DNA from: Macrostomum lignano
Taxonomy: Eukaryota
Length of the DNA stretch: 64,000 nt
Direction of reading: 5' to 3'
Assembly (NCBI GenBank): GCA_002269645.1
Contig: NIVC01001281.1
Span: 62,001 to 126,000 of the forward strand
Below are positions 6,798 to 63,445 of the stretch, in pieces. The position numbers and the translations under genes were made by a program. How positions within the stretch are numbered: position 1 is the stretch's first letter; every line of letters starts with the position of its first letter. The notes beneath the pieces are model-generated. The model saw only the letters and a list, made by a program, of their open reading frames with translations. It was not told where the DNA came from and did not search any database.

Positions 6798-7214
6798 CGA
6801 CGCCTTTGATTTTTGTCATTCCGCATATTAATATATAAAATCTTATCATATGTTTACATGAGTATTTTTCTTCTTGCCTCAAGCTGCTTTCCTCGAATGT
6901 CTCTTCCAATTTTCTTGCTGTTGCCGGTTGCTGCCGGGTCCGGCCATTTCATTCTGTATGTGTAATAATATATTTAATCATATGTCTATTTATTTATTTG
7001 TCGTTTTATCAATAAAACATTCAGGCATTTAGCAGGGTTGCTTCATTCATATAGCGTTGATGATTTTGTTGGTATTTTTATTTTAGTTAGCTGCAAATTA
7101 ATAGTTTCATTTAGTAGCTTTGGTATTCAACTCCAATGAATGTTGACTTTGTGCTCCAACTCGCATTTCCGCTTTCAGTTCAGCTGCTTCGCCGGTTTTA
7201 AATCAACGCAAACA

Positions 7215-16653: not shown

Positions 16654-18490
16654 GCGATCGTGTTGGTGTGATATCAACTATTTTTAGATACTTAATATAA
16701 TATATACATAATCACCTGTTTATCTCTGTTTGCCCAAGTGCCCTGCGCTCATCGCTATTTAAATTGGAATATAATTCATTAAATTGTTTTGCCGGAGTAA
16801 AAGCTAAAAAACAACGCAAAATTAAGATTCATTTTTTCTAATTTTTATGTACACACCTCTGCATGATTATGCCGCCGATATCTAACCATAACTAGCTTAG
16901 TATAAGTAACCTCGCACCTATTTATTTAGTTTGTGTAACCCAACTGCTTGTTTAAAATTTGTTATACTTTTTAAGTTTCACTACTTTGCGAAGCGATTTA
17001 GTGTCTCGTAATGATGACAACTCCGCCTTATCTTGAGCATATGACACGATTGGTCATTGTTGCCTACAAAGACTCGTGTAAAACTTTGTTATAATAGCAG
17101 GCTTCCCGTTAAATGGCTGCCTCTTTGACTTTGGTTTCTTTGCAAAGACGCCCAATTTCTAATACGCGTTTCGTTTCTATGTTGTCGTAGAATCTTTCCC
17201 TTCTCTATCGCGTCTGCTGGGCTTAGGGGTCTTTGTTCCGATTTAATTTCGATCTCAATTTCGCGAATGGCGCTGACTATTCTTAAGTGACATTCTCTGT
17301 TACTGTATAACAAATCATAATGATAGAATCAAATACAAAAAGATTTGCAGCTTTTTTCTTTGCTGACGTCTACAGCAAGTACAAATAATATAGGTCATAT
17401 TATACGAGCCGTAAAATTAACTAAGCTGTTTAATTTTGCTAGATCTTTTATTCATTGTTTATCCACCGACAACTAAGGAGGAAGTAGAAAAGCACCAACT
17501 CTCGAAAAAAGCAAAATCGAATTCTGCGTCGTATCCGTTTACCATAAAAAATCCATGTAAACTTGCGCTGAGATTAATCTCCGTAATTTCGCTTGTTTTC
17601 CTGTCTTCAAGTAAGTGCAATTCAAGTCCCGGTGCAATCACCGGTACGCTCGTATTACAACAGACTAGATATGTCATTTGAACAAAATGCTCTTTCTACT
17701 CTACTCTTTCAGTAGCAAAGTTAGCGTATTTACTTAATTATAGTAGAATTAGATCGTTACAATATACATAAGTTGTTGGCTTTCTTCAAGAAGACCCAGG
17801 CTACTGCTAAATCAGCGTCTTTCAAGGCTGCATTGGAATCAAAATTATGAAAATGAAATTACTTTGAGACCAGCTTGATTGCTAACTTCGCTATTCTTAT
17901 CTTTTAATTATTAGAAGGGCGCTATGCCTGTTTATTAGGTTAGCTGCCCTGCCCTAAAAATTATGTCTTCGAAATGTCGTGATAGCCATTCCGCAGCGCA
18001 GTGGGATTACACTCCCACATTGCTGTGCCATTAACGGCAAAGACCCTTTTTATGAAGGGCTGGTTGGGAAATTCAGTGCTGATTCTAAAAAACAACTGCA
18101 CTAGCTCTCCTGCTTTTTTCGTTTTCTTATAGGATACTTATCGCTGAGAAATTTCAACGTATGTATGAAGATAATTTTAGATAAGGCAATCAGAATTTTT
18201 ACAACGTAAGGCACACTTGCACCGCTCGACAAAACACTGCATTTGAACCACCGCGAATCACCATTTATAGGCGTAACTGATATCGTAGTCCAGCAGTGTG
18301 CCAATATTGCAAATGGACACTACTTATAGTAAAATAAATGACTATGAAATCCGAAATTAAGTACATTCTACTTGAAATGCAATTAAATGCTTGCATTTTA
18401 TACTCAAGCATGTACAGTGTATAATTGAGCAATGAGAAACATAATTTTAAAGTACAGTTTTGTTTAAAACACGTTCATAACAGTTTATAA

Positions 18491-21400: not shown

Positions 21401-21654
21401 ATCTTACTAGACGTGGCCGAGCCTAGAAATATATTGGCCTCCATCGCCTGCTCGGAGATGCTGGCGAACCAGTCGCTGCGCGGCTTTGAAGCCGATTTCG
21501 AATCTTTTTCTTCCCATTGGTAGCTGGCAGCAGCCTCCTGGCCCTGAGATGCTCCAGACGACGATGAAGAAGATGATGAAGAAGAGCGCCGCTTCTTTGA
21601 CTTGCTTTTCTTGGACTTTTTGGACTTCTTCTCGTGCTTAGATTTCTTACCCAT
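18491..21654 (-). CDS. CWF19L2: CWF19-like protein 2 (spliceosome disassembly factor), about 857 aa, 2 exons
   Basis: Exons 21654-19402 and 18811-18491, joined by a GC-AG intron. K/S-rich N-terminus; WYRRAYRRCQEQA...ERWGS; CwfJ C-terminal domains (CDLC, SLVDKHCLL, CVFVET, VPRGFPYLAVEFG, FGREVIAGMLDL). Confidence 0.93.
18850..19080. repeat. Purine-rich (GA) low-complexity tract in the CWF19L2 intron
   Basis: gagaagagagaagagagg... On the transcribed strand this is a pyrimidine tract ahead of the acceptor. Confidence 0.75.
19151..19333 (+). repeat. Dispersed repeat, CpG-retaining copy of 3-129
   Basis: Shared blocks with 3-129, plus an insertion of roughly 55 nt. Confidence 0.75.
20403..20916 (-). 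repeat. 45-bp coding minisatellite, 11 units (SGANWRRSEADDQQR) within CWF19L2
   Basis: ctgaccgttgct recurs every 45 nt from 20403 to 20898. Confidence 0.95.
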
Positions 21655-24600
21655 TTGTAGCAGTTTCAATTTTGGGGCTGTAAAAGCAATGTTTGTATAT
21701 TAAATGTAAAGTATTTGATCTATTATTGAAAGATTGTTTTACCATATCGAGGCGAGAGGTTGTCACTTAAAATTAATAGGTTATCATACAATCTGATACT
21801 GAAAACTTTTAATATTAAGATAGATAAAACAGATGTCTTCTTTAATTCATTAATTCTGTCTAATCCTTTAAAGTAGCTTGTATATCCAAAATGGTGCACT
21901 AAAATAAAAGCTTATTACCCTTATTAACATTTCATTGTTCATCAAGAACCTGAGATTGTAATTTGACTAATTTGCATTTAATTTAAATTGTATCTATATG
22001 AAAATATATTAATTAGCTAAAAATCATCTAATGAAAGTTATAGTGTTAATATAACTGATAACAAATATTTCATAACTAAAATCTATATTTGATAAATAAA
22101 ATATGCCTAATTTCAGCAAGCAAACTTCATTGAATAAAATATTATGCAATAAACTATTCTCATAGCTATTAAAATACATGTATATTTTGTATTATATTGA
22201 ATTGCAATTGGTCAATAATAATAATAATAATAATTAATACTTGACCAGTTGACCTAATAGGCAGATAAGTAACCACAAGCTTATCTATAGCGAGCCCCTA
22301 TTGTATTATTTTCTTTTTTTCTCTTCTTTTCTTATAAAGGCTATCTATGACTACTCAGTCTTAGGACTAAGGCCTTTTTAAATATACCTTCAATTATTCC
22401 CAATTAATGCTAATATCCATTTTATAGCTAGGTAGACTAATGAAATGCAAAGTTAAGCATCTTGCTAAAGGACACAAATTGCTTAGCATAGGTTGAGAAT
22501 AAAACTTTGCAACTTTTAATTGTATGTCTAAATACTAATATGCTTTAACTACTAAGTTAAAACCCCTTTTCAACTTTATAATTAATTACAATTAGTATAA
22601 AAGTGAAACCAATAATGAATTATTTAGGTCTTATATGTACTTTTCACAAATTGTTTTATTTATAAGGCTATAGCAAATTAGCAACTAGGCTTATTTGCAA
22701 AGCCATAGTCAGGAAGGTGGCCTTTTTCATAGAAAATTCCTGCAAAAAAAAGGGTTAGATGTGCGCTGTGCTGGCGCAGTCCAGCAAAACAGCTAGCAAG
22801 GGAGAAAAATCTAGCGCAATATGGCACAAGACAAAAATGGCACAATTTGGTGCATGACAAAAATTTCCAACAAGACAATATTTTCTCTGACAGAAAATTA
22901 GCATGTAACTTCTTTTTATCAGCATTTTTATTTGCAGTTTATTGATAGATTTTTTAATTAATTTACATTAACATTGCATTTTCTATGAAACAGATTCAAA
23001 TAAACATTTTACTGGTATCTTTCAAATAAAAAAATAAATTTTTAAATTTTGTTTCAAGTTGTGATACATGGTATAAGCAAACTTTTTTGATAGGATTTAT
23101 TCCAGCACAGGTGTGCCATGATTTTGACTATGGATATAAAGTTCTGGTATCTAATCTTCTTGAACTTAAGCTCTTTTTCTTGAATATATTGAAATTAAAG
23201 TATCCCTAGTCAAGTGGCTTATTAACATATGACTTTTTATAACAATTGTACTAATATATCCTTTTTCTTTATTTATTTATATTTTATTTTAAGATCTATT
23301 TTTATAAAGTAGAAACTTGCCTAGGCCTAATCCTTTTTGCTAATTTATCATTTCTATAATTTGCATTATTAGCTTAAAAATATTTTTAAATTTAAAATTT
23401 ACCTAATTTATTACATTTTTATTCATCATCTAGTTACATACAAATATTTTAAATTTATAATCTTCTAATTTTATTTACTTTTATAAATTCTAAATAAACC
23501 TAGCTATATTTTTTACATTTATCCTTTTTTATTGAAATATATTATTTTAAATATTATAATATTAGCATTAGGCCTAACTTATAACTATTGTCTATTGCAA
23601 ACGTTCAATAGGCTCAATGCCTCAATTGAATTTTAAAATAAGAATCCTTAAATAGAAATATTAGAAATAGAAATATTGGGTCTCCTTACCTTACTACCCT
23701 AGCTATGATTATAGAATTAAAAGTGGTCTATACTTGCTTTGATATCAGTTTTAGGACTACTTATACACTTAGACATATAAGCCATAGGGGGTAAAGATGA
23801 CCAACTTATTTATAGGCCCTAGGCCTAGTTTAGTTACAATGTCAATAGAATTAGGCCTATAAATAATATATAGGGCAAAAGCCTGATAAATATTCTGTAC
23901 ATTATTCATGTTATTGTTATTTTGAATTTGTTATTTTCTGTTTTTTACAATTTTTACACCAGCAGCAATGCAGATAGAGGAACTAAAGCAAATTACTTTT
24001 CCCTTGGCCTTGTAAGACCTATTTCCTGTTGAGAATTTAGTCTATACGAAATATAGGGCTTACAATATAATAAGTTACTAACAGATAGTATTAAGGACAC
24101 AAGTGTTGATAGTCAGAGCTAGGCCTAGTAACTGCTCTAGCACTGTGATCTCGGTCAACCCCAGGACTCCAGGATTCACGTCACGTCTGTTTAACGGTTT
24201 AGGGTCGTTCTCAAAGTTTAGTCGTAGGCAGTGAAACAAATATTTTTGAAAATCAGCCTGAAATATTGAATCTTTTCTTATTTTAGCTCTAAAAGGACTT
24301 AAAAAATATATGCCTCTCATGGGTCTTAATCTTTTTTAACATTGAACTTTTGATGTTAATCTCATCAGAGTGCGCTATTTCATTTTTCGATATATATTTT
24401 TATTATCGCACGAGCTATAATACCCACTTTAGAGAAGCTACATTCTGTTCACGTGGTCTTATTAAAGAAGAAAATTGATAAATGTTATTTATAACTTTGG
24501 TTAACACAACCTAGAACCCATTTAACTCTTTCGATTGCAAAGCAGATGTTGCTATTTCGATTTTTGCTAGAAACGTAACATTATGAATGATTAAAAAATT

Positions 24601-30090: not shown

Positions 30091-32646
30091 CTACTCAACC
30101 GAGCTGACCTGGTGAGCCTGCCTGTACTGCTCGCTCTTGGCCATGTGCCTTGCCAGCTGCAGGGCTCCGCTGTAACTCCAGCGCAAGGCCGGCTCCTCAG
30201 CATCCGCGCCCGGGCGCAGCTCCAGCTTCAGGTTGAGGCGGTTTCGCGCGATCCTGTCGGCCAGATCAGCTCGAGCTGTAGCAGCTACCTGGATGATGGC
30301 CAGGTAAGATAAGATGTGCGACAACTTTGCTACTGGCACCGTTCCAGGCGTGGTAACTTCGCGTTCCGCGGCGGCTGCCGCTTCAAGGAACAGCCTCCTA
30401 GACAAATGGTCGAATGCGTTCTCGCAAACCGTCTCTGAAACGGCCATAAATTCCCGCTCGGACATGTAGCCAAACTCGGCCATTGGAGACTGTTGGCACT
30501 TGGACTCCATCTCAAGAAAGTAGGGGTCTCTGTAGCGCAGCAGCATGTACAGGATGTAGTTGTACACCGATCGTCGGCTAACGCGATTCTCGCAATACGA
30601 AACGAAGCCAATTTGAAAAGTTTCGACGTCGTCCTCAAGCATAAATGGAAATGCCGCCAGCACAAACTCTCGAAAGTCTTCCGAGTGGCGAAAGTCGACC
30701 TGGTTGACCAAGTCGATCAGCACGAGGAAGTAGCGGAAAGCGGCTCCGTCTAGGTTGTTGCACAACATGTGACTGAACATCCGCAAATGGTCGTCTGTTT
30801 CGGCGTGGCTCTCCAAACTGGTAAAGAAGTCGTGCGCGGCCAGAAACACCACATCCTCCTGCATGTAACGCGAATAGAGGAACTCATAGAAGTTGTCAAG
30901 CACGGAGTAGCCCTCCTCGTCGTCCGGAGTGTACTCGTCATCCCACAGACAAGTCGCGTAGAACTGCTCGATTAGCGACTCAATCAAGCTCTTCGGCTGC
31001 TTGATCGGATGATGTCGCACAATGTCAGTGCGGGCGTGATAGTCGTCCCATACCCGCGAAAACTTGTTAACAAATCTCGTGTCTTTTTCGTCTGGCTCGC
31101 CACTCTTGCCGGTCTCGGTAGTGAGGCCGGTGTTGAAGCTGGTCCGGCTTTCGTCGCGAATTCCCTGCTGCTTTGGCAGTGGAGGCAGGCCCGACTTGCG
31201 CTCAAGCATGCGCATCTCCTGTAGATTCTGGCGCAGGACTTCCTGGTTAACTTTCACCTCGGGACGATTGAGACGAAGGTGGCTAGCATTGGTTGGCAGC
31301 GGCAGTACGATCTCGCGGCCTCGAAGTTTGTGGGGACAGACGGTGGTCTTCTCGAAGCACTGATGACAGTAGTTTGAGCCACCAAACTCGCTGAAAGTTT
31401 TTCCACCGTTGGTAGAGACGAACAACATTAAGGAGTATTTGCTGAACACGCGCTCATTAACTACAAATGGATCGCCAGGCACATAGTCATCGTTGCTAGG
31501 GTCGCCTGCATTGCTGATGGTCTTCAGCAAGTCAAGCACGGAGTCCCCGTCTCGTTCATTTGCCTTAACCATGCCAAGCAGTTGCTCCTCCAGCATCACC
31601 TGGTGCTTGGTGAGTAGGTTCATCTCGTTGTCAATGCGTTCAATATTCTCTAGGAATCGTTTCTGATTCACAATCAGCTGCTGGTCGGCAGTTTCCGCTT
31701 CAAAATTTCGAATCGACGATGGATCTGTGCTCACAGTGGATGGTCTGCCGTCCGCTTCTCGATTTTCTTCGCTACTGATGCTCGCTTTGTGCTTCTCTAA
31801 GAAGCCATCAAACTCTTGTATAAGAAGGTTTTGTCCCTTCAGCAGCTGATCTTGGAGCTTCACGGCAGCTTTGATGTCGGCAATCAACTTTTCTTTTTGA
31901 GACAAAGGCTTCGGCTTCTGACTCTCCGACTTCTTGTCCTCGTAGGCTCGCAGCCCGATGTTCTGAAATTCGATTTGCATCTTGTCGTAGCCCTCTTTGT
32001 ACGGCTTGCAGAGATCGCGATCCGCTGTAACCAGGCGCAGTTCCTCTTGCAAGTCCTGATAGTCAAACTTCATCTCTTGGATTTCCTTCTCTGTAGACTG
32101 CTGGTATAGTTCAAATTCTTTCTGAATCAGCGCCTTGTCTTCCTCCAGGAATCGAATTTCGCCCATTAGTTTTGTCATTGTTTCATCCCTCTCGTTAATT
32201 TCACAAGCCAGTTCATCATTCTTCATGAGCTGCTCTTCAAAGCTTTGCTGCTTTTCGAAAAGTTTCTTCTCCATGCTTGAAACGCTCTCTTTGTAGTCAT
32301 CCTCTTTGTATTTCGCCTCCTTAAACAGCCGCTTGACCTCTTCCATGTGCGGAATTCGTTTAATTTCAGCTGAGTCCTTTGTAATTCCCGGATGAATCGA
32401 GTCCGAGAACACTGCCTCAACCATCTCTTTCCGAAGTTCTACAAAAAGTTCTTTAAAGACACCGAGCTGGCCAAGAACTTCATCAAGAACTTTGAACATG
32501 ATGTAGATTCGCTTTGGACCAACGCATTCTTCGCCCGATGTCAAAATCAAAGTCTGGTACTTGGAAACCAAGCTTTGCTTATCGCTCAAGCTTTTTTCAA
32601 CATTAAGTGGCCGGAAGAGTGGCTCCTTGTCCACATTTAGAGCCAT
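30091..32646 (-). CDS. Intronless 851-aa coiled-coil protein, tentatively TSNAXIP1-like
   Basis: Long ATG-to-stop ORF with genic composition. Contains an N-terminal helical segment (RIYIMFKVLDEVL...ELRKEM), a coiled coil, a CHQC...CPH motif and a helical C-terminal region (FYEFLYSRY...MFSHMLCNNLD). The family assignment is from recalled resemblance only. Confidence 0.85.
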   Translation of the reverse strand: MALNVDKEPLFRPLNVEKSLSDKQSLVSKYQTLILTSGEECVGPKRIYIMFKVLDEVLGQLGVFKELFVELRKEMVEAVFSDSIHPGITKDSAEIKRIPHMEEVKRLFKEAKYKEDDYKESVSSMEKKLFEKQQSFEEQLMKNDELACEINERDETMTKLMGEIRFLEEDKALIQKEFELYQQSTEKEIQEMKFDYQDLQEELRLVTADRDLCKPYKEGYDKMQIEFQNIGLRAYEDKKSESQKPKPLSQKEKLIADIKAAVKLQDQLLKGQNLLIQEFDGFLEKHKASISSEENREADGRPSTVSTDPSSIRNFEAETADQQLIVNQKRFLENIERIDNEMNLLTKHQVMLEEQLLGMVKANERDGDSVLDLLKTISNAGDPSNDDYVPGDPFVVNERVFSKYSLMLFVSTNGGKTFSEFGGSNYCHQCFEKTTVCPHKLRGREIVLPLPTNASHLRLNRPEVKVNQEVLRQNLQEMRMLERKSGLPPLPKQQGIRDESRTSFNTGLTTETGKSGEPDEKDTRFVNKFSRVWDDYHARTDIVRHHPIKQPKSLIESLIEQFYATCLWDDEYTPDDEEGYSVLDNFYEFLYSRYMQEDVVFLAAHDFFTSLESHAETDDHLRMFSHMLCNNLDGAAFRYFLVLIDLVNQVDFRHSEDFREFVLAAFPFMLEDDVETFQIGFVSYCENRVSRRSVYNYILYMLLRYRDPYFLEMESKCQQSPMAEFGYMSEREFMAVSETVCENAFDHLSRRLFLEAAAAAEREVTTPGTVPVAKLSHILSYLAIIQVAATARADLADRIARNRLNLKLELRPGADAEEPALRWSYSGALQLARHMAKSEQYRQAHQVSSVE

Positions 32647-34694: not shown

Positions 34695-37600
34695 ATGCCA
34701 CCGCCACCACCGCCGCCCAAGCCACCAAAGCCGCCGAAGCCTTCAAAGCTTCGGGCTTCAAAGTCGGCCCGAAACCTCGGCGAGCTGAGCGAGCGCCTCG
34801 AGCAGCACTTCGAAGGCGAGCCGGAGGTGCATGAGCTGTCCAACTTTCTTCAAGGCGGCGACCTGCGCAGCTTGTTGGCCATGCACGACAGCCTCAAGCG
34901 GCTTCAGAAGCAGCGCCGCAAGGCCGGACCCGACAGCGAAGCGTTTCCAGGTAAGGAAGATGACGATTTGTTTGATTTTATTTTTGAATTTGATTTTTTA
35001 GTCATTCTAGCCCAGCAAGAGTCAGTCGCGTATCTTAAGTATCCAAGAGACAGTGACGCCCAGCAAGAGACGGTGGCGCCCAGCAAGAGACAGTGACGCC
35101 CAGCAAGAGTTAGTGGCGTCCACTAAGAGACAGGGGCGCCCAGCAAGAGACAGTGGCGCCCACCAAGAGACAGGAGCGCCCACAAAGAGACAGTGACGCC
35201 CAGCAAGAGTTAGTGGCGTCCACTAAGAGACAGGGGCGCCCAGCAAGAGACAGTGGCGCCCACCAAGAGACGGTAGCGCCCAGCAAGAGTCAGTGGTGCC
35301 CAGCAAAAGTCAGTGGCGCCCAGCAAGAGACGGTGGCGCCCAGCAAGAGTCAGTGGCGCCCAGCAAGAGACGGTGGCGCCCAGCAAGAGTCAGTGGTGCC
35401 CAGCAAGAGTCAGTGGCGCCCACCAAGAGACAGGGGCGCCCTCCAAGAGACAGTGGCGCCCCAAAAACACGTCCTGAGGATTGGCGCCCATCCACCCAAA
35501 GCAGATTCTGTGTACGCCACCTAGGGAAGATTGCGACTAATTTAAAGCTCACATTCCATTCATCCACCGCAGGCGTATCGCAGACTGAGTACGTGCGCTC
35601 GCTGCACGACACCCTGGAGCAGCTGGAGACTGTCGCGGCCACAGACGACGAAGCCAACGACCTCTACGAGTTGCTGGCCTCCGGCCGGCTCAACACCTTC
35701 GTTGAAGCTCTAGAAGACATCGGGCACCGGAACTACGAGGGCGACCGGTTGAGGAAGGCGCGAAACGCCGAGAACGACGAAGTCGCCGCCGCCTCGGCCG
35801 GCCTGCACGAGTCGGCGGTCGGCGGAGCTTTGGCCGAGTCGCCTGGGCCGCTGTCTGGCCGGGCAGCTTCGGCTGCGACCCCCGTCTTCTCCGACGGCAA
35901 CGACGACGACGCGTTTGGCGCGGCGCAAACACTGCAGCCGCAGCCGACAGGCGACCCCATGATGGACGATCTGGACGAGTTCGACAGGCCTCAGAAGATG
36001 GTCGCCTTTGCCAAGGTTTGTAGGCAGGGCTGCCGTCTCTTTGCCAGAGCATCTGCTGACATTGTTTCCCGCTTTCATCTGATCTAGGCATTTTTCTCTG
36101 TCTTGACCTCCCCTCCTCTCCCTTTGTGTGACTTGACCTCCCCTCCTCTCCCTTTGTGTGACTTGACCTCCCCTCCTCTCCCTTTGTGTGACTTGACCTC
36201 CCTCCTCTCCCTTTGTGTGACTTGACCTCCCCTCCTCTCCCTTTCTGTGACTTGACCTCCCTCCTCCCCTTCCTTTTGTGTGACTTGACCTCCCCATCTC
36301 TCTGTGACTTGACCTCCCCATCTCTCTGTGACTTGACCTCCCCATCTCTCTGTGACTTGACCTCCCCATCTCTCTGTGACTTGACCTTCCCATCTCTCTG
36401 TGACTTGACCTCCCCATCTCTCTGTGACTTGACCTTCCCATCTCTCTGTGACTTGACCTCCCCATCTCTCTGTAACTTGACCTCCCCATCTCTCTGTGAC
36501 TTGACCTCCCCATCTCTCTGTTGCTTGACCTCCCCATCTCTCTGTGACTTGACCTCCCCATCTCTCTGTGACTTGACCTCCCCATCTCTCTGTGACTTGA
36601 CCTCCCCATCTCTCTGTTGCTTGACCACCCCATCTCTCTGTGACTTGACCTCCCCATCTCTCTGTGACTTGACCTTCCCATCTCTCTGTGACTTGACCTC
36701 CCCATCTCTCTGTTGCTTGACCACCCCATCTCTCTGTGACTTGACCTTCCCATCTCTCTGTGACTTGACCTCCCCATCTCTCTGTGACTTGACCTCCCCA
36801 TCTCTGTGATTTGGCCTCCCGTCCCAATTTAAATCTACATTTACGAGCGTACAACCTTCTCTGCCTTCCCTTCCGGCTTTCAACCCAAGACTCGCTGATA
36901 AACTTCCAATGACGCGCATTTTCTCCTCCCCCCGCACTCTCTCCGTCTGCCTCATCGCGCCCAGATGCCCGGCGAAGACCTCGGCATCACAGTCGGCACC
37001 ATCGAGTGGTACGACGACAACACAGGCCAGAGCGGCCTGGACATTGTTGTCGAACGTATCATGGCCGGCTCGCGTATAGAGCAGCAGGGCGTGCTCAAGC
37101 CCTATGACGTCATCAAAGAGGTGAACGGCATTCCGATTGACTCGCCAGAGAAGCTGCAGCAGGTGATGCGCAAGGCCAGCGGCAATGTCACCCTCAAGGT
37201 GCGCTCCGGATTCTATGAGGCCGGCAAGGGCAGCCAGGTGAGTTCTTAACGACTTCTGCTTCTGCGGGAGAATCTGCAATACTGATGGATAGATTAGCAA
37301 TCCACTCCAATCCTTCATTCCTGGGATACTGGTAGATTAGCAATCCACTCTAATCCTGCACTTGTGAAATAGATTAGAAATCCACTCTAATCCTGCATTC
37401 CTGGGATAGATTAGCAATCCATAAGTCAAAGTAGTTCAATAATAAGAATCCAACATGACAGCCTAGTACTAATTTGAAAAACCGATTCCAGGAAACATTC
37501 GTAAGTATTTTATAAAGAAATATTATGCACTTGCCGTTGTATTTTATTGTTGTTGTGTCAACAAATTTTCTTTTGTTGTCAAACCCGCTTTCTGTAGTTT

Positions 37601-43085: not shown

Positions 43086-43710
43086 TCCTGAAATTGATTG
43101 CAATAAGAACCAGCTAGGGAAAAATTAGACCTAAACGGGCATTTAACGCCAGATAGATAGGCCTTTATATGTCAATGCGTCAATGAATGAATGGTTCGTC
43201 CAGGAAGGTGTCGAATACGTGTAGAATCAAGCAGGCAAAACCTAACACTGACGCAACCAATCAACTCACGCATCTTGGCAGTCGCAACTCAAACCACAGA
43301 TCTACGAGCAAGGGGTTTTCAAACTCCAACGGAGCGTCTTTTCAAACCCGCAATCAAGATCTGAAGCTAGATTGCTCAATCTGCCAACAATGGGCGGCAA
43401 CCAGTCGTGGCTGTCCTGCGACAAGACCTACCCGGAACCGCCTGGCAGCAACGAAGCAAAAGGTCGGGACAACTCGGAATCGGGCAACCTGCTGGTCGCG
43501 GTGATCATGTTCGTGCTGACCATCGTTCTGCTGCTACTTGCCGTGACGGTCGCCAATTGCATCGCAATCTCTCGACGTCGTCGCCGAAGACCTCCGGCAG
43601 CTCATGGACCGCCAGCCGCTTCTGGACAGGAAGCTTCAGGTGGAAGCTACGGAGACAACGCCGACAACGATGAAGACGAAGATGATGACGATGAAGACGA
43701 CTCGTCGGTG

Positions 43711-43801
43711 GCTTGGCAAGATTCTGCACCTCCACGAAGCGTGCCGTCAACACGCGGTGCCAAGCGGGCAACCGGAGCAACCCGGTTGGCAAAGCAGAAT
43801 C
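43711..43801 (+). ncRNA. HDV-like self-cleaving ribozyme at the LINE 5' end, with a hairpin inserted in L3
   Basis: P1 43711-17/43759-65; P2 43720-27/43794-801; P3 43728-30/43756-58; L3 starts UCCACG; P1.1 CC 43732-33/GG 43766-67; P4 43769-75/43782-88; J4/2 GCAAA with C43790. All stems are Watson-Crick perfect. Activity is untested. Confidence 0.85.
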
Positions 43802-46800
43802 GGGGGGGGGGAGAGAGGCCCGTAGCCTCGGCGTAACAGCCGCGGTCTATGGGCAAACCTCCTCGCAACAGAGTGGCTTGGACCTAACCGACCCAGGCAC
43901 CTCTCGAAACAACAGTAAGGTTGAAAGCTTTGCCGAAAGTGAGAGAGAGAGTGAGGAACTGCTGCGGAAAATATCAAAAAAAAACAAAAAAAAGAAGGAG
44001 CATGAAGCGAACAAGGAAGAGAGTAATTGCACGTACCCAGAAAGCAAGGAAAGGCGAAGGGCTGAAATCAGCAGAGCGCTCGAGACCATCGAAAAGAACC
44101 CAGGACCGAGGCGTCCAGCACAAAAGACGGCACGGAAGCTCAGACGAACCACACGACGAAAAAAGGTACGAGATAGGAAAGCGAGAGAGAAGGCCAGGAG
44201 GGCAAATGAGAGGTGGCACAATAACGACATAAAGCTAGCGACGTGGAATATGCGCAGAGCGAACGTAGGAAGCGGAAGGTTCGGCGAGGTCGTTAAGTAC
44301 GCGATAGGAAAGGGATGGGACGTCACCCTCCTATCCGAACTTGACACACCTGGCGTTGGCATCAGAAGCTACCATCACAGAGAAGCAGAGATGCACCTAG
44401 TCCACTCCCAGAAGGTGGGAATGCTTCTGGGAGAAACAGCCTGGACAATGTGGAACGAAACTGGGAGGAAGATGCACCCGATGAAACGAACACTTGCGCT
44501 GGAAATAGGCGGAGTGATCCTGATAGCCGTATACCAACCGGTCAAGAAGGGTAAAGAGTACGAGGAAGAAGTGGATGAGATCCGAGAAGAAATCGAAAGG
44601 ATGCTGAACACCTTTGCAAAGAAGGCTGTACTAATCATCGGTGGAGATTTCAACGCCAGCGTTGGGAGCGGAGTGCACCGTCTCTCGAGCACAGGCCGTT
44701 ATGGAATCGGACCAACGAACCAACAGGGTGAAGACCTACTTCTTTGGCTAGAAAGCCTAGGCCTGGCATGGGCGAGCACCTTCTACAGGCAGAAGAAGCA
44801 AGGCACCTGGCGGAACCCGAGGTCACACCAATGGTACGAGATTGACGGCTTCATCACCAAGAAAGAGCAGAGACACCGGATCATCGGGAGCATCAGGACC
44901 GACCACGATCCGAATCACCATACGAGGTCCGACCACCTACCGAAGGTCATCACCATGAAGAGAAGATTCGCGGAGAGATGCGCGGAACCAACCAGGAAGT
45001 ATCCAAAAAACCAAAAAAACGAAATCGCCTGGGACCGGCTCCGCGATGTCGGCGTACGCGAACTATACAGAAATAAGACGGAGGAAGTGCTAGCTGGAAA
45101 GGGCGAGACCGACTGGGAAACGACGAAACAAACGATGCTTGAAGCCGCGAGAGAAATCTGCGGCCCAAAGACGAGACAGACGAACCCGTGGATGGTAGGG
45201 CACGAAGAAGAGCTGGCAGAACTTAACAAAGAAGTGGAGCACGCCCTGAGCGCCCGCAACCGAGTTAAGAAGTCACCCGAAGGGACCCTAACAGTAGAAG
45301 AGCGGACGGTGGCCTTGACCCGAGCCACACAAGGGCTGAAAGAGAAGCGGGGAAAGCAGAAGAAGAAACTCCAAGAGTGGATGGAACAGTGGTGGATGGA
45401 GATTGCCGAAGAGTGCAAGCGGAACTGCGACACGGGAAACGTGGCTGGGATGTACGACTGTTTGCGGAAGATGGGCAGGAACACAAAGCAAAATGAGAAC
45501 AACAGCAGAACAGTACCACTGTTCACGGCGGAAGACTTCAAGGAACACCTGTCAAAGATCCAGGAGCAACGGTTCGAGAACGACCAGGAGGAAATGCTCA
45601 ATCTAATTAGGTCAGCCCCAAAGCCAAGCGTAGACAAGGCTACGATAGAGGAAGCCAATGACCGGCTGTCCAGACCACTAACAAACAAAGAGATCGACGA
45701 CGAAATCAAAAAGATCAAAGACGGGGCCCCGGGCTTAGACGGCATCCGAATGCGCTACATCACCAGCGCGTGCGCAATGGCCCAAGCGGAGGTCCGGAAA
45801 GTAGTGCACTACATCTGGAACAACCCAGCGGACACCTGGGAGGAGGACCAGAAAGTAGGTGTAATCATGCCACTCCACAAGAAAGGCGATCGGACGAACC
45901 TCAATAATTTCAGAGGGATCTGCCTCCTACCAGTCGCAAGCAGGATACTCGCTCGGATACTGGCGACGAGGCTGAGCTCATGGACGGAGAACATGGGTCT
46001 GCTAGACGACAACCAGTTCGGTTTCCGGAGCGGCCGGTCCACTATGGATGCGACCCAGATCATACTCAGACTGAACGAGGACGCCGAGAAGATCAGAGAG
46101 AGCCCAGAATGGGCAGAGTCGATGGATACCAGCCTAGTCTTGCTAGACCTTAAGAAGGCCTACCCGCGGGTAAACAAGCCGGCTCTTTGGGAACTGCTGA
46201 AACATCAGCACATGCCGGAGCGCACGATAAAAAAGCTGGCAGACCTGCACGAGTACACCGCGTACACGGTACGGTGCGGCGCAGAGACAAGTTCCGAATT
46301 TTACCCACAACGCGGGCTGAGAGAAGGCTGCGCCACATCGCCTATCCTCTTCAACATCTATCACCAGACGGCGATACGGATAGCAAAAGAGAGGCGCATG
46401 GAAAAAGCGAAGAACACCGGGGCCGAATGCGGAATCAAGTGGGTTTGCCGACCGGGCAAATGCTTACCGCCTAAAAAGATGGGAGGTTACAACGAAGAAG
46501 CGGCGGAGATAACAATCACAGAAGTACTGTTCGCTGACGACACCACTATTGTCGGGGGATCCGAGGAAATCGAGCAAGGGACGAGAACCGTCATCGAGAC
46601 CATCGGAATCCTAGAAGAACGGACGAACGATGAGAAGGAAGAGCGAGCTAAGCTAGGAACACCTGAGAGTCAGAACATCCGGATACTGGGCACCTGGATC
46701 GGCAGAAAGCAGGACACCGCCCAGCGGCTGCAGAGAGCTGCCAAAGCGTGGGCGGGAGTCAAATGCATGCTACGCAAAACACGACTAAGCAAACGCACCC

Positions 46801-47834
46801 AAGCTAGGATCATAGAGACCTGTGTTGAGAGCACGATGCTCTTCAATGCAGGCGCCCGGCCCTTCCACAAGTCGGAAATTAAGCGGATGCAGCAGGCAAT
46901 GGACCGTCGTTATCGGTACGTGTGGAGCAGCAAGACCGAACCACCGCTAAAAGAAATGGAGAGAAAAAAAGTGAACATGTGGGACGTGCGGAACGAACTG
47001 CGGGTCCGAAGCATCGGCGCCAAAGTCGAATCGGCCCACTGGCGCAGGCTAGGCCACGTACTCAGACTCCCGGATACCAGCACCGTCAAAAGATGTGTCC
47101 TCGGCTGGAGCAAGAAGCTGACTACCATCAAGAAAGCGCGGAAGAGAAGGCAGACCATCATCTCGGTATGGAGAAAGCTACTGCGCACGGCAGAAATCGA
47201 TGAGCTGGAGGTCGAAAGGCTGGTGACCGATAGAGAGGCTTGGAGAAAGAAGTTACGCATCAGGGAAAGAGCGCTGGAGGAGAGCGAGAGGAAGAAAGGA
47301 AAGAAAGCAGAGACGACTGAGGAAGAAACAGCACAGGAAAGAGAAGCCGGAGAAGTGGAATCGGAGCTGACCGGGTACAGGTGCAATTACGAGAACTGCG
47401 GGAAGGTGTGCGCGTCGAGAGCCGGGTTAGCCGTACACCAACGGAGGATACACCATCAATTTACGAAGACACCGCTGCCGTGCCTAAAGTGCAACGCTAC
47501 CTTCTTCACGGAGGCGACAAGAAAAAACCACCAGAAGAGGTGCGGAGGAGAGGAGCGATCGGCGAAAGAAGTCCACTGCGGAGAGTGCAACAAGTGGATA
47601 AGCAAGTCCAACCACGCACGGCATAGGAAACGGTGCAAGGAGAACGGAAGGAAACCAGAGGCGGGCGCGACACCGGACGAGAGGGCAGAAGAAGCAGCAG
47701 TACCAACGGGGAGAGGCCAGCAGACGACGGGGATTACGGCGCGGATCTACAAGAGCGCCAGAGCTCCGTGCCCGGACTGCGGGAGGATGCTGGCCCGCAC
47801 GAACATGGCCAGACATCGAAAGACCTGCCAGTGA
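43713..47834 (+). CDS. Retrotransposon polyprotein: AP endonuclease, reverse transcriptase and four C-terminal zinc fingers
   Basis: Uninterrupted 1373 codons. APE motifs TWNMR, LLSE, GGDFNA, EIDGF, SDH; RT motifs QFGFRSGRST, LDLKKAY, GLREGCATSPILFN, LFADD. The true start is unknown; the first in-frame ATG is at 44250. Confidence 0.92.
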   Translation: MARFCTSTKRAVNTRCQAGNRSNPVGKAESGGGREARSLGVTAAVYGQTSSQQSGLDLTDPGTSRNNSKVESFAESERESEELLRKISKKNKKKKEHEANKEESNCTYPESKERRRAEISRALETIEKNPGPRRPAQKTARKLRRTTRRKKVRDRKAREKARRANERWHNNDIKLATWNMRRANVGSGRFGEVVKYAIGKGWDVTLLSELDTPGVGIRSYHHREAEMHLVHSQKVGMLLGETAWTMWNETGRKMHPMKRTLALEIGGVILIAVYQPVKKGKEYEEEVDEIREEIERMLNTFAKKAVLIIGGDFNASVGSGVHRLSSTGRYGIGPTNQQGEDLLLWLESLGLAWASTFYRQKKQGTWRNPRSHQWYEIDGFITKKEQRHRIIGSIRTDHDPNHHTRSDHLPKVITMKRRFAERCAEPTRKYPKNQKNEIAWDRLRDVGVRELYRNKTEEVLAGKGETDWETTKQTMLEAAREICGPKTRQTNPWMVGHEEELAELNKEVEHALSARNRVKKSPEGTLTVEERTVALTRATQGLKEKRGKQKKKLQEWMEQWWMEIAEECKRNCDTGNVAGMYDCLRKMGRNTKQNENNSRTVPLFTAEDFKEHLSKIQEQRFENDQEEMLNLIRSAPKPSVDKATIEEANDRLSRPLTNKEIDDEIKKIKDGAPGLDGIRMRYITSACAMAQAEVRKVVHYIWNNPADTWEEDQKVGVIMPLHKKGDRTNLNNFRGICLLPVASRILARILATRLSSWTENMGLLDDNQFGFRSGRSTMDATQIILRLNEDAEKIRESPEWAESMDTSLVLLDLKKAYPRVNKPALWELLKHQHMPERTIKKLADLHEYTAYTVRCGAETSSEFYPQRGLREGCATSPILFNIYHQTAIRIAKERRMEKAKNTGAECGIKWVCRPGKCLPPKKMGGYNEEAAEITITEVLFADDTTIVGGSEEIEQGTRTVIETIGILEERTNDEKEERAKLGTPESQNIRILGTWIGRKQDTAQRLQRAAKAWAGVKCMLRKTRLSKRTQARIIETCVESTMLFNAGARPFHKSEIKRMQQAMDRRYRYVWSSKTEPPLKEMERKKVNMWDVRNELRVRSIGAKVESAHWRRLGHVLRLPDTSTVKRCVLGWSKKLTTIKKARKRRQTIISVWRKLLRTAEIDELEVERLVTDREAWRKKLRIRERALEESERKKGKKAETTEEETAQEREAGEVESELTGYRCNYENCGKVCASRAGLAVHQRRIHHQFTKTPLPCLKCNATFFTEATRKNHQKRCGGEERSAKEVHCGECNKWISKSNHARHRKRCKENGRKPEAGATPDERAEEAAVPTGRGQQTTGITARIYKSARAPCPDCGRMLARTNMARHRKTCQ

Positions 47835-48897
47835 GTCGGCGGCAGAGCGTCCACGCCGCGAGGCGAGAAAAGGACTGAAGAAGAAGAAGACTCGTCGGTG
47901 GTGTCGCTGGATAGCGTGACGGCCAGGGCGGCGGCGCTGGCTCAGCACCGACGAATGAGCCGCATTGCCATGCAGCAGCAGCAGCAGCAGCAGCAGAAGC
48001 AGGAGGAGCCGGATATTCGTCAAGAGCAGTCGCTGCATCTCGAAGTGCCGTCGACTGGCCTAAAAGGTGTTGAAAATGCTGGATTTTTAAGGTCACCGGC
48101 TTCTTGAAGTTTTTCATGTTACATATACATTACATTCATATTAGCTCGTATATTACTCGAGATAATTAATTTTTCTTTGTCAGAGCAAGGTTTATTTGTT
48201 GTTAATTACCAGAGTCTGATACATACGAAAGAAACAAATTGCATATCGGTGCATTATTTGGCTGGGTTTATCCAAGAAAAATTTTCAACTTCGGATGTAT
48301 TGTTCTGAACGTGCATGTCATGCAGCTTGTATTGGTTCATTTAACAATTTTTCCTGTAGATATACGTAAAAGCCACGCTCTGTGTGCAATATACTGTTGA
48401 ATTACTGTTTAAAATTCACTAATATTGATCAACTTCCTTTTCTAGGAAACGAATATACCACACTGAATCATACGGGGAACAACAGTTTCCAGAGTATATA
48501 TAATTCTTTGCCTTTTGTTGCTCCTACATCTCCCAAAAAGTGCTAGCCATATTTGAACCAGCTGGATAAACTTTGTGTTCTACGCCGGTACAGCAACAAT
48601 GCCGTTAGGAAATATGCGGGAGGGCTAGCTGAGAGTAACCCACACGTCTCGCCCATGGCCACATTTAATACTTAACTCGTGCACAGCAAACTGGCCTGGG
48701 GGGCGGCTTGTCTTGCAATTCACGCTCACCCGAGTCAACCACCAAGGCACAGACGCGAAAGTCGGGGCCGCTGTGCACTCATTGGATGTGTACTTATCCG
48801 TGCGCGTGCTCAGGGATCAGCGGAATGAGGATAATTGTATGCCTCCTCGTTGGCTGTGGGTCGACTGCGGCCTTGATTTTCGGTGGGTCTGTAATTC

Positions 48898-62125: not shown

Positions 62126-62337
62126 ATTATCTGGGCGTTGAAGGGAAAAATTGACAGTTATTAGCGATAAAACAAATCTATGTACTGTTTAAGGCTTCTG
62201 TGGTGTAGGTTTACCAGAATTGTTAACTACTAAATAAACAATTTCCCATTAGAGCTGTTGACTCGCGCTGACACTCTGGAATCGGATATGTTGCATGGAA
62301 TTACATTGATTATTGACTCTGCAGAGTCTATCTGGTC

Positions 62338-63445
62338 ACAGTGTGGCATTCGTGACAGTGTAGCACTGGTGACAGTGTAGCACTGGTGACCGTGTAGCAC
62401 TGGTGACAGTGTAGCACTGGTGACAGTGTAGCACTGGTGACAGTGTAGCACTGGTGACAGTGTAGCACTGGTGACAGTGTAGCACTGGTGACAGTGTAGC
62501 ACTGGTGACAGTGTAGCACTGGTGACAGTGTAGCACTGGTGACAGTGTAGCACTGGTGACAGTGTAGCACTGGTGACCGTGTAGCACTGGTGACAGTGTA
62601 GCACTGGTGACTGTGTAGCACTGGTGACCGTGTAGCACTGGTGACCGTGTAGCACTGGTGACCGTGTAGCACTGGTGACAGTGTAGCACCGGTGACCGTG
62701 TTGCACTGGTGACAGTGTAGCACTGGTGACCGTGTAGCACTGGTGACAGTGTAGCACTGGTGACAGTGTAGCACTGGTGACCGTGTAGCACTGGTGACCG
62801 TGTAGTACTGGTGACCGTGTAGCACTGGTGACAGTGTAGCACTGGTGACAGTGTAGCACTGGTGACCGTGTAGCACTGGTGACAGTGTAGCACTGGTGAC
62901 AGTGTAGCACTGGTGACAGTGTAGCACTGATGACCGTGTAGCACTGGTGACAGTGTAGCACTGGTGACAGTGTAGCACTGGTGACAGTGTAGCACTGATG
63001 ACCGTGTAGCACTGGTGACAGTGTAGCACTGGTGACAGTGTAGCACTGGTGACCGTGTAGCACTGGTGACAGTGTAGCACTGGTGACAGTGTAGCACTGG
63101 TGACAGTGTAGCACTGGTGACAGTGTAGCACTGGTGACAGTGTAGCACTGGTGACAGTGTAGCACTGGTGACCGTGTAGCACTGGTGACAGTGTAGCACT
63201 GGTGACCGTGTAGCACTGGTGACAGTGTAGCACTGGTGACCGTGTAGCACTGGTGACCGTGTAGTACTGGTGACAGTGTAGCACTGGTGACCGTGTAGCA
63301 CTGGTGACAGTGTAGCACTGGTGACAGTGTAGCACTGGTGACAGTGTAGCACTGGTGACAGTGTAGCACTGGTGACCGTGTAGCACTGTTGACCGTGTAG
63401 CACTGGTGACAGTGTAGCACTGGTGACCGTGTAGTACTAGCAACT
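62338..63445. repeat. 17-bp minisatellite
   Basis: Unit gtgacMgtgtagcactg. It explains the three Cys/His-rich minus-strand ORFs. Confidence 0.96.

Follow-up and report, generated by a model that had tools for sequence, protein, structure and literature searches.

The 64-kb stretch of Macrostomum lignano DNA analysed here (the window) contains an intact single-ORF LINE that extends from position 43711 to ~47888; the element and all of its features lie on the forward strand. The single intact ORF (43713-47834, 1373 codons) is open through a putative HDV-like ribozyme at the element's 5' end. Further downstream it encodes a 2A-like ribosome-skipping motif, LETIEKNPGP (44079-44108), an AP-endonuclease domain (44520-44942; Pfam Exo_endo_phos_2 match, amino acids 270-410), a reverse transcriptase (RT) domain (45876-46694; Pfam RVT_1, amino acids 722-994) and a C-terminal region with four Cys/His zinc-finger-like motifs (47376-47831). 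The 2A motif takes the form TIHPNPGP or TIEPNPGP in relatives, among which its residues G131 and P132 are nearly invariant. The zinc fingers of the window element were identified by motif reading (C1224 and C1229 are invariant); zf-C2H2 Pfam matches are faint and occur in relatives only. The Pfam search of the window ORF returned no RNase H family at E <= 0.01. A short 3' UTR (47835-47888) carries the (GAA)n tail (47877-47889), and the CUGAAGAAGAAGAAGA tail is common to the window element and three relatives (L001, L008 and L009).

The element is flanked by a target-site duplication. The upstream copy occupies 43693-43710, with an unambiguous core, GACTCGTCGGTG, at 43699-43710, and the downstream copy of GACTCGTCGGTG occupies 47889-47900; the 3' end of the element is ambiguous with the duplication. 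The core is identical at 12/12 positions and can be extended to 19 nt with one mismatch (43693-43711 versus 47883-47901). The duplication abuts P1 of the ribozyme at the boundary 43710/43711, a junction that is exact only to within 1 nt since G43711 also matches G47901. The insertion lies within a same-strand coding exon of the host, whose ORF is restored when the flanks are joined. The window copy is young, as seen from its intact ORF. No second copy was found within the 64-kb window, and the protein search found no empty allele or paralogue of the host exon.

Structure of the putative 5' ribozyme

The first 91 nt of the element (43711-43801) read as a nested double pseudoknot with the canonical strand order P1-P2-P3-L3-P3'-P1'-P1.1-P4-J4/2-P2' and a predicted cleavage site 5' of G43711. 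The 5' strand of P1, GCUUGGC (43711-43717), forms seven Watson-Crick pairs with GCCAAGC (43759-43765), and its pairing probability in the folding calculation is ~1.0 once the P2 strands are blocked. P1 begins with a G-C pair, versus a G.U wobble in viral ribozymes. J1/2 (AA, 43718-43719) leads into the 5' strand of P2, GAUUCUGC (43720-43727), which forms 8 bp with the 3' strand, GCAGAAUC (43794-43801). P3 pairs ACC (43728-43730) with GGU (43756-43758). The L3 core, UCCACGAA (43731-43738), aligns with the CCUCCNCG core in the Rfam HDV models, and U43731 and G43736 occupy the conserved U/G reverse wobble positions. L3 thus has a U at position 1, CC for P1.1 and a G at position 6 (UCCACG, 43731-36). 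P1.1 itself is formed by C43732/C43733 with G43766/G43767 (GG, 43766-67) of J1/4 (GGG, 43766-43768), after which G43768 completes the joining strand. The P4 hairpin (CAACCGG/AGCAAC/CCGGUUG, 43769-43788; arms 43769-75 and 43782-88) is present in both the MFE and centroid structures. In J4/2 (G-C-AAA, 43789-43793), C43790 stands at the position of the catalytic cytosine and is followed by AAA (43791-93). C43790 is matched to the model catalytic C by both Rfam HDV models and by R1, a covariance model built from relatives only, with the window sequence left out. The sequence-only reading had claimed a complete nested double pseudoknot here, and all of its pairings are present and are conserved with compensatory changes at related 5' ends.

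Between the L3 core and the 3' strand of P3 lies a 17-nt stem-loop, GCGUG/CCGUCAA/CACGC (43739-43755; arms 43739-43 and 43751-55, loop 43744-50), which brings the window L3 to 25 nt (8 + 17) rather than the 7-8 nt expected of HDV-like ribozymes. The folding calculation gives this hairpin -6.6 kcal/mol and a probability of 0.53, and its energy is unexceptional for its context (z = -0.06). Among random 17-mers, end-to-end closure by at least 5 bp is seen in only 0.2%. A competing hairpin in the same calculation (43741-47/43754-60, -8.7 kcal/mol) would tie up P3 together with part of P1.

Related elements and covariation

The best protein matches to the window ORF have 33-39% identity and come from marine metagenomes and Branchiostoma; no closer M. 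lignano copy was among them. Relatives at this level of identity carry HDV-like ribozymes at their 5' ends, and 12 lineages are included in the alignment. A scan of JGI metagenomes gave usable 5' ends from two loci only (L014 and L015). A plain MAFFT alignment of the ribozymes misaligned the window sequence and the 3' halves and was replaced by N-padded hand alignments that MAFFT left ungapped.

Across the 12 lineages, 94.5% of the helix cells are paired versus 35-44% with the partners slid, the paired percentages being inflated by structural alignments (A4-A6) that were made by hand to fit the fold. Both sides change in 26/30 pairs (5-12 with the partners slid), and the observed pairing and covariation values were reached by 0/500 shuffles. 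Covariation is also seen in a 7-lineage alignment. All 8 pair positions of P2 change on both sides among relatives, and P1.1 covaries from CC/GG to UU/AA in L014 and to GC/GC in L024. The catalytic C of J4/2 is invariant (12/12 lineages); together with P1, P1.1 and, in most lineages, the L3 U/G positions, it is kept or compensated in 11/12. No convincing P1 was found in the pair L008/L009 (3/6 pairs), and no ribozyme was found in L011 (Branchiostoma) or L021.

Search models and chance expectation

A strict descriptor was used to estimate how often such a fold is expected by chance. It demanded P1 of 7/7 pairs starting with G, P2 of at least 6 bp abutting P3, P3 of 3 bp, an L3 starting UCCNCG and 6-45 nt long, and GG after P1. 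In both strands of the 64-kb window its sole match is at 43711, and 300 dinucleotide shuffles gave one match, or ~0.003 expected per window. (A loose descriptor gave many false matches and was replaced by the strict one.) R1 places its top match in the whole window at 43711-43803 (16.2 bits, E ~0.004, full length). In its alignment L3 takes a 19-nt insert, versus 2 nt expected by the model. A second R1 match, at 4223-4255, is partial, lies in GC-rich coding sequence and was rejected.

The Rfam models align the window ribozyme end to end at scores below their gathering thresholds (RF00094, 24.5 bits versus 50; RF02682, 22.5 bits versus 44), and both need a 19-nt insert in L3 to do so. At gathering score, the Rfam search across the window returned U11 only and no HDV-like ribozyme. 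The canonical relative L006 also falls under the threshold (29.1 bits versus 44), indicating that the Rfam HDV models are weak for this LINE group generally. In E-value mode on the related loci, Rfam missed even the canonical L010.

The expanded L3

The HDV active site is built from two strands, one of which is L3, and both descriptors and covariance models take the length of L3 to be fixed. The formation of P1.1, to which L3 contributes, is described as the rate-limiting folding step. The 3' arm of the window insert is contiguous with the 3' strand of P3, which leaves L3 as an 8-nt bulge on a lengthened P3 helix. The closed stem would join the ends of the insert, and neither the core geometry nor the loop-closure cost of P1.1 formation would need to change. 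The ORF frame stays free of stop codons through the insert.

The 17-nt stem-loop is absent from eight related lineages, each of which has an L3 of 7-8 nt. The earlier description of the insert as atypical is therefore borne out by these relatives, as well as by the L3 of CPEB3 and antigenomic HDV (7 nt) and of genomic HDV (8 nt) (bioRxiv 10.1101/2022.09.22.508989). The perfect 5-bp stem-loop that it had placed between the L3 core and the 3' strand of P3 is likewise seen. The exact insertion point within L3 is ambiguous because CACG is present twice (43733-36 and 43751-54), and the original parse is the more stable of the two registers. With one copy of the window element examined, there is no within-family covariation for the hairpin, which could be private to this copy.

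The remaining four of the 12 lineages are expanded at the same site: the window element and L025 by 17 nt each, L001 by 19 nt and L007 by 38 nt. Three of the four expanded L3s open with a 5-bp hairpin, and the stem sequences are unrelated; those of L001 and L007 are UGUCA/UGGCA and CUGGA/UCCAG, respectively. The L025 insert is unstructured, which indicates that a hairpin in L3 is not a requirement. Its sister L023 has no insert; the 5' UTRs of the two align closely downstream of the ribozyme, and between them P1 and P3 each stay paired through two double changes. The parses of L001 and L007 were made by hand, anchored by homology, and are matched by no covariance model; the L001 ribozyme has a bulged 5-bp P1 and a weak P1.1. 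Rfam gives L025, L001 and L007 17 bits at best, and the family covariance model from canonical relatives missed all three (3/4 of the expanded forms). Rfam at its thresholds misses all four. The proposal of a hidden ribozyme subfamily gains support from L025, L001 and L007, with 17-38 extra nt at the same position of L3. On the evidence of these sequences, the L3 site is tolerant of insertions in the LINE group of the window element, and the L3-expanded form has the look of a variant, within a known ribozyme family, that has been overlooked and that escapes the standard search models. A literature search for an insertion inside L3 of an HDV-like ribozyme found nothing relevant; an earlier description is possible.

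The element's 5' end and a proposed mechanism

The predicted cleavage site had been said to coincide with the boundary of the target-site duplication. This agrees with the duplication ending at 43710/43711 (with the 1-nt ambiguity) and with related flanks that diverge at or near P1. The flanks of L008 and L009 diverge at the first base of P1, and those of L004 and L002/L005 within a few bases of it; L003 is without the 5' strand of P1, and the contig of L001 starts 1 nt before P1. P1 and the catalytic C matter for HDV-type cleavage, a reaction that leaves 5'-OH and 2',3'-cyclic phosphate ends and is lost when the catalytic C is changed to U. L008 and L009 share their exact 5' end and have identical intact ORFs despite a broken P1, showing that the position of a 5' end alone is no proof of cleavage.

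Taken together, these features suggest that 43711-43801 is probably a working HDV-type self-cleaving ribozyme that processes the 5' end of a young M. lignano single-ORF LINE and that tolerates an expansion of its L3. The mechanism proposed below (transcription, cleavage, reverse transcription and translation) draws on the anatomy of the element and on known families. The element, putatively promoter-less, would be transcribed within a longer host transcript, here from its position in a same-strand host exon. The double pseudoknot would then fold and C43790 would catalyse cleavage just 5' of G43711, freeing an RNA that begins with the element's own first base. The cleaved RNA would serve as the template for target-primed reverse transcription, so that full-length copies would start at P1. 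The folded 5' end may also be where the reading frame starts. In the window element and most relatives this frame stays open across the ribozyme, and the first in-frame AUG of the window ORF is at 44250, inside the endonuclease region. The absence of an in-frame AUG before the 2A motif in the window element, L001, L025 and L027 suggests that a non-AUG codon in or close to the ribozyme is probably where translation begins, as has been proposed for R2 and L1Tc. The leader peptide encoded by the ribozyme would then be shed from the endonuclease-RT protein by the 2A motif.

Alternative explanations

Several other explanations of the locus have to be weighed. A GC-rich 5' UTR might fit the drawing of an HDV-like ribozyme by chance, and the Rfam scores below gathering and the modest z-score of the fold (-1.82, from nested-only folding) point in that direction. 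This is scarcely credible given that the sole match of the strict descriptor falls exactly at the element boundary, that R1 matched the same place independently and that the fold covaries over 12 lineages. Alternatively, an internal promoter that starts at position 1 could set the 5' end (as does Pr77 of L1Tc), with the fold serving mainly in the start of translation or in recognition by an element protein and self-cleavage being weak or dispensable. The first 77 nt of L1Tc act as a promoter as well as an HDV-like ribozyme (PMC3383444, PMC5814959), L008 and L009 keep a common 5' end with a broken P1, and the AUG-less frame of four lineages suggests a translational role of the fold. However, the parts of the core that cleavage depends on are kept or compensated in all lineages but one, and a same-orientation site in a host exon is the known co-transcription setting of promoter-less ribozyme LINEs (PMC6765202). 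Promoter and ribozyme roles are also compatible with each other, and it is quite unlikely that the 5' end is set in this way with little contribution from self-cleavage.

Two further explanations concern the insert itself. The ribozyme family may be real and the 17-nt hairpin a private mutation of a single copy, arising from slippage during replication or reverse transcription, with the CACG repeat on either side, and either neutral or crippling for cleavage, such that M. lignano has no functional L3-hairpin variant. The window holds a single copy and the protein search matches include no M. lignano copies. The direct repeat brackets the insert in a manner typical of slippage-type insertions, template-switch events can make inverted repeats without selection, and the energy of the hairpin is unremarkable. 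On the other hand, the 5' end of this young copy is exactly at P1. Barring an origin of the insert during or after integration, this indicates that the copied RNA had the hairpin and that its end was nevertheless at the cleavage site. Three other lineages have an expansion at this site and keep all helices, the insert closes cleanly from end to end as a stem of a kind seldom made by chance and is placed for the least disturbance of the core, and the frame stays stop-free through it. A private mutation without function is thus unlikely. It could also be that the other register is the active one, with L3 composed of UCC (43731-33), an 18-nt excursion (43734-51) and ACGC (43752-55), the conserved L3 guanine being G43754 and not G43736 and the GCGUG/CACGC hairpin not forming in the active state. 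Besides the CACG duplication, this register is suggested by MAFFT, which pairs 43744-58 (GCCGUCAACACGCGGU) with the GCGACCUCCGAGCGGU of relatives, and by the L3 of relatives ending ...G-C right before P3, like ...ACGC-GGU in the window. Its excursion, however, is closed by a 4-bp CACG/CGUG helix only (-2.0 versus -6.6 kcal/mol), whereas UCCACG directly after P3 has the canonical spacing. Both Rfam models and R1 put the insert after UCCACG, and L001 and L007 likewise have a stem right after the L3 core, which makes the alternative register very unlikely. The preferred reading is a self-cleaving ribozyme with a hairpin inserted after the L3 core.

Comparison with known ribozymes and significance

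The HDV-like ribozymes of R2, R4/Dong, baggins, RTE and L1Tc release the element RNAs from co-transcripts and may promote their translation (PMC3774820, PMC6765202, PMC5814959). The window element shares with R2, R4/Dong, baggins and RTE the nested double pseudoknot, cleavage (predicted here) at a first base of P1 that is also the first base of the element, release from a co-transcript (also predicted) and an ORF that is open to the 5' end without an AUG, where the fold has been proposed to help start translation (PMC3774820, PMC6765202). In R2, however, the 15 nt that make up P1.1, P3 and L3 show high conservation of both sequence and length (PMC3774820), in contrast to the 25-nt L3 of the window. 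Unlike R2, the window element is not rDNA-specific, has an AP instead of a REL endonuclease and possesses a 2A motif and C-terminal zinc fingers. By domain plan it can be likened to L1Tc/ingi (L1TcRz in Pr77), whose first ~80-90 nt include an HDV-like ribozyme and whose single ORF encodes a 2A at the N terminus, an AP endonuclease, an RT and, at the C terminus, C2H2-type fingers (PMC5814959, PMC3383444, PMC3708506). It differs from L1Tc/ingi in lacking a detected RNase H, in having a (GAA)n tail and not poly(A), and in its metazoan host.

The HDV and CPEB3 ribozymes share with the window ribozyme P1, P1.1 (CC paired with GG), P2, P3, P4, the catalytic C of J4/2 and U1 and G6 of L3, and differ in the L3 (8 + 17 nt in the window) and in the first P1 pair (G-C and not G.U in the window). 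Large HDV-like ribozymes similarly carry extra helical domains on an unchanged core, which may aid or tune folding (PMC4908430), but their described peripheral domains are in J1/2 and P4 whereas the window module is placed within a strand of the catalytic core, L3. The search that found minimal HDV-like and theta ribozymes used RNArobo descriptors in which the core was fixed (PMC10879173). These ribozymes share the core motif and have a shrunken periphery, whereas the window ribozyme enlarges a core loop and would not be returned by descriptors with a fixed L3 length.

It is a serious if tentative possibility that the L3-expanded HDV-like ribozymes form an architectural subclass that is functional and recurrent. 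Modules of 17-38 nt, usually opening with a stem that extends P3, may repeatedly be accepted on the 3' side of L3 in a widespread metazoan LINE group. Catalysis would be kept and the module would perhaps add a function (tuning of folding, recognition by protein or a non-AUG start of translation on a leader that 2A removes). Across animal genomes, such ribozymes may have escaped both the present Rfam models and descriptors with a fixed core. Should L3 be able to take up a helix, searches with a fixed L3 would undercount HDV-like ribozymes; the L3-expanded examples receive 17 to 24.5 bits from Rfam, or no score. In that case regulatory modules, natural or engineered, would also have in L3 a candidate third site in addition to J1/2 and P4. 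The effects of loop closure on P1.1 formation could be followed in the natural series that the LINE group provides, with 0, 17, 19 and 38 extra nt in structured and unstructured form. The group also joins in animals a ribozyme, an AUG-less ORF that starts inside the ribozyme and a 2A motif, a trio otherwise best known from the trypanosome L1Tc.

Structure and genomic setting of the predicted ribozyme

A sequence-only reading had placed an HDV-like ribozyme with a hairpin inserted in L3 at the exact 5' end of a retrotransposon, and all of its helices and joins and the L3 stem-loop are found in the sequence 43500-44100. On the plus strand, P1 joins 43711-17 to 43759-65 (7 Watson-Crick pairs), J1/2 is AA, P2 joins 43720-27 to 43794-801 (8 pairs), and P3 pairs ACC with GGU. 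P1.1 pairs C43732/C43733 with G43766/G43767, P4 pairs 43769-75 with 43782-88, and J4/2 consists of G43789, C43790 and AAA. There are three copies of the motif CAAC (43748-51, 43769-72 and 43778-81), each of which could pair with GUUG at 43785-88. After the 8-nt L3 core (UCCACGAA, 43731-38) comes a stem-loop with a perfect 5-bp stem (GCGUG, CCGUCAA, CACGC; 43739-55), which directly adjoins the 3' strand of P3. Since CACGC is contiguous with GGU, the most apt description of the insert is a lengthened P3, with the predicted L3 core as a bulge on that helix.

The element is a LINE (43711 to ~47888, plus strand) with a single intact ORF of 1373 codons (43713-47834) that encodes an AP endonuclease and a reverse transcriptase (RT; both by Pfam) and four C-terminal Cys/His fingers, followed by a short 3' UTR and a (GAA)n tail. 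It is flanked on both sides by GACTCGTCGGTG (43699-43710 and 47889-47900), a duplication that reaches 19 nt with one mismatch. The cleavage site had been placed at the duplication boundary; the duplication does adjoin 43711, but because G43711 and G47901 are the same base the 5' junction is uncertain by 1 nt. When the flanks (43372-43710 and 47901-48107, plus strand) are joined, an uninterrupted host reading frame runs to a stop codon and encodes a transmembrane segment and an acidic, Q-rich (poly-Q) tail. Thus, the insertion is in a coding exon and the element has the same orientation as the gene, a setting that would allow co-transcription of a promoter-less element. A search of the protein collection gave no homologue of the interrupted exon. 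Insertions of the window element and its relatives tend toward GAT/GAA/GAC-rich, microsatellite-like DNA (window 43680-43710 and 47877-47889; flanks of the related loci L003, L006, L009, L010, L014, L015 and L025), and the element tails are themselves short repeats ((GAA)n, (GAT)n or (TAGTG)n), which suggests microhomology between tail and target during priming.

The window also carries a U11 spliceosomal snRNA gene (17915-18051, minus strand; RF00548, full length, 89 bits, gathering score 39) and a host ORF of 851 aa (30091-32646, minus strand) with 99% identity to BOX15_Mlig015929g4 of Macrostomum lignano, a free-living flatworm, which assigns the window to this species. Long ORFs at 7140-8726, 13307-14665, 19306-21669, 35293-37318 and 62230-63443 consist largely of tandem peptide repeats such as ENLETDQV(N/D)EG, RSGANWRRSEADDQQ and CHQCYTVTSATLSPVLH.

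Related elements and covariation

The closest proteins to the element ORF share just 33-39% identity with it; their sources are marine metagenome contigs, about as long as the element, and Branchiostoma belcheri. Of 28 related loci fetched, almost all whose sequence spans the 5' region have an HDV-like fold at the 5' end, among them L004 (the same element again at L002, L003 and L005), L006, L010, L022, L023, L014 (also L015), L024 and L027. The flanks of L004 and L002/L005 part within a few bases of P1, and L003 is without the P1 5' strand. L008 (44-146) and L009 (78-180) are insertions of the same element; their 1316-aa ORFs are identical and they have an exact 5' end in common, with flanks parting at the first base of P1. 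Their P1 is broken (3/6 pairs) and J1/2 holds a 30-nt insert.

Pairing was assessed in a structural alignment made by hand for 12 lineages (also in a 7-lineage version). An alignment fitted to the fold makes such figures generous, yet the signal is far beyond this bias: standard pairs form in 94.5% of helix cells (35-44% with partners slid 1-3 columns), 26 of 30 pairs are changed on both sides (5-12 when slid), and none of 500 shuffles reached the observed values. P2 has double-sided change at all eight positions, the first position of P3 takes five pair types, and P1.1 covaries to UU/AA in L014 and GC/GC in L024.

Several relatives are divergent. L014 (41-128) and L015 (134-221) have L3 UUUAAGG, P1.1 UU/AA and C at +1, and immediately follow a (GAT)n repeat, while L024 (37-96) is a minimal form without P4 whose P1.1 is a G-C plus a C-G pair. 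The first P1 position of L022 (87) and L025 (56) holds A facing C in place of G facing either U or C. If protonated, an A.C wobble would be isosteric with the G.U wobble that viral ribozymes have at their cleavage site. Directly after the tails of L003 (~4270-4579) and L004 (~4205-4413) lies, head to tail, 5'-UTR-like sequence of another related element, which opens with the palindrome GGTGGACGTCCACC and in which an HDV-like core was looked for and not found.

Expansion of L3

The L3 insert is atypical, as had been claimed: L3 is 7-8 nt in eight related lineages (UCCGAGC, UCCUCGU, UCCCAGU, UCCAAUGU, ACCAAAC, UUUAAGG, UGCUCGU), 7 nt in the CPEB3 and antigenomic HDV ribozymes and 8 nt in the genomic HDV ribozyme (bioRxiv 10.1101/2022.09.22.508989). 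The P1.1/P3/L3 core is highly conserved in R2 ribozymes (PMC3774820), and the known peripheral domains of HDV-like ribozymes lie in J1/2 and P4 (PMC4908430). For the window ribozyme, the Rfam models RF00094 and RF02682 both require a 19-nt insertion, exactly in L3.

Three further lineages are expanded at the same site, in keeping with the earlier suggestion of a hidden subfamily, although two of the parses are less certain. L025 (56-140) has L3 UCCGAGC plus 17 unstructured nt ahead of the P3 3' strand, and RF02682 aligns to it at full length with a 22-nt L3 insert (17 bits). Its sister L023 has no insert; the two 5' UTRs are closely alignable downstream of the ribozyme, and pairing in P1 and in P3 is each kept through two double substitutions. 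L001 (2-80) has L3 UUCGAG plus 19 nt opening with a hairpin (UGUCA, CAGAGA, UGGCA), a CPEB3-like P1.1 and a minimal GNRA-capped stem as P4, its contig beginning 1 nt before P1. L007 (242-343) has L3 CCCGAGC plus 38 nt that can open with CUGGA, ACCGGA, UCCAG. The L001 and L007 parses are less certain because they were made manually, anchored on L023-homologous sequence downstream of the ribozyme, and were matched by no model searched. In the protein tree no expanded lineage has another as its closest relative: L025 and L001 have L023 between them, L007 falls in a different part of the tree, and the window element branches outside all lineages but one. L3 expansions were therefore gained more than once or are old with repeated losses. 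A 5-bp stem directly follows the L3 core in three of the four expanded L3s, with unrelated stem sequences; among random 17-mers with the local base composition, end-to-end closure by at least 5 bp is seen in only 0.2%.

The window hairpin alone has -6.6 kcal/mol, which is unremarkable in its local context (z = -0.06). When the P2 strands are blocked, about half of the ensemble contains it and essentially all contains P1. A competing 7-bp hairpin (GUGCCGU/GCGGUGC, 43741-43747 with 43754-43760, -8.7 kcal/mol) is present in the nested MFE structure; it would tie up the 3' strand of P3 together with the start of the 3' strand of P1, and could be a folding trap or switch. CACG at both insert ends (43733-36 and 43751-54) makes the insertion register ambiguous. 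Plain MAFFT aligned the second copy with the L3 of relatives, i.e. toward the alternative register, which would be closed by only -2.0 kcal/mol.

Alternative explanations

Chance as the source of the resemblance to the HDV fold is effectively excluded. A strict descriptor that left P4, the hairpin and the J4/2 sequence out of its criteria matched only 43711 on either strand of the window, and matched once in 300 dinucleotide shuffles (~0.003 expected). A covariance-model search was made with R1, a model built from the ribozymes of related elements with the window left out, which scores its own source loci and their extra copies at 27-59 bits. Its best match in all 64 kb is 43711-43803 (16.2 bits, E ~0.004 by rough calibration), full length, with a 19-nt L3 insert where the model expects 2. 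A second, partial match (4223-4255, plus strand, 11.2 bits) was judged to be chance, lying in GC-rich coding sequence without P1.1, P4 or the continuation of P2. Only U11 snRNA lies above Rfam gathering thresholds in the window; local E-value searches aligned the ribozyme end to end with RF00094 at 24.5 bits and with RF02682 at 22.5 bits, the gathering scores being 50 and 44, respectively.

The L3 hairpin, known from one copy of the element (the window holds no second), may be private to that copy. However, the copy is young and ends exactly at the predicted cleavage site, and three other lineages are expanded at the same place. The element's 5' end could also be set by a Pr77-like promoter, a possibility kept plausible by L008 and L009, which keep the same 5' end despite a broken P1, and one compatible with cleavage also occurring. 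The observation made in the sequence-only reading is confirmed overall, and in silico evidence supports its interpretation of 43711-43801 as a putative HDV-like ribozyme at the 5' end of a LINE.

Proposed mechanism and novelty

By analogy with R2, R4/Dong, baggins, RTE and L1Tc (PMC3774820, PMC6765202, PMC5814959), the ribozyme would free the element RNA from a host co-transcript. Cleavage leaving G43711 as first base would explain why integrated copies begin at P1. In the window and most relatives the ORF runs through the ribozyme without a stop. A conserved 2A-like NPGP motif follows after 60-130 codons of the ORF in the window (LETIEKNPGP, 44079-44108, plus strand; TIHPNPGP in relatives), L001, L004, L006, L007, L008, L010, L022-L025 and L027. 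There is no in-frame AUG ahead of this motif in the window, L001, L025 or L027; L023 and L008 have one inside the P2 5' strand. The placement of AUGs suggests a translation start within the ribozyme region, and we infer that it would use a non-AUG codon within or close to the folded 5' end, after which 2A would release a leader peptide. Single-ORF LINEs with an N-terminal 2A motif are already known (PMC3708506), and the window element has the full combination of L1Tc (ribozyme, 2A, AP endonuclease, RT and C-terminal fingers; PMC5814959). A ribozyme at a LINE 5' end is a known kind of arrangement; the expanded L3, a hairpin in the window and recurrent among its relatives, is, to judge from the literature searched, a new variant.
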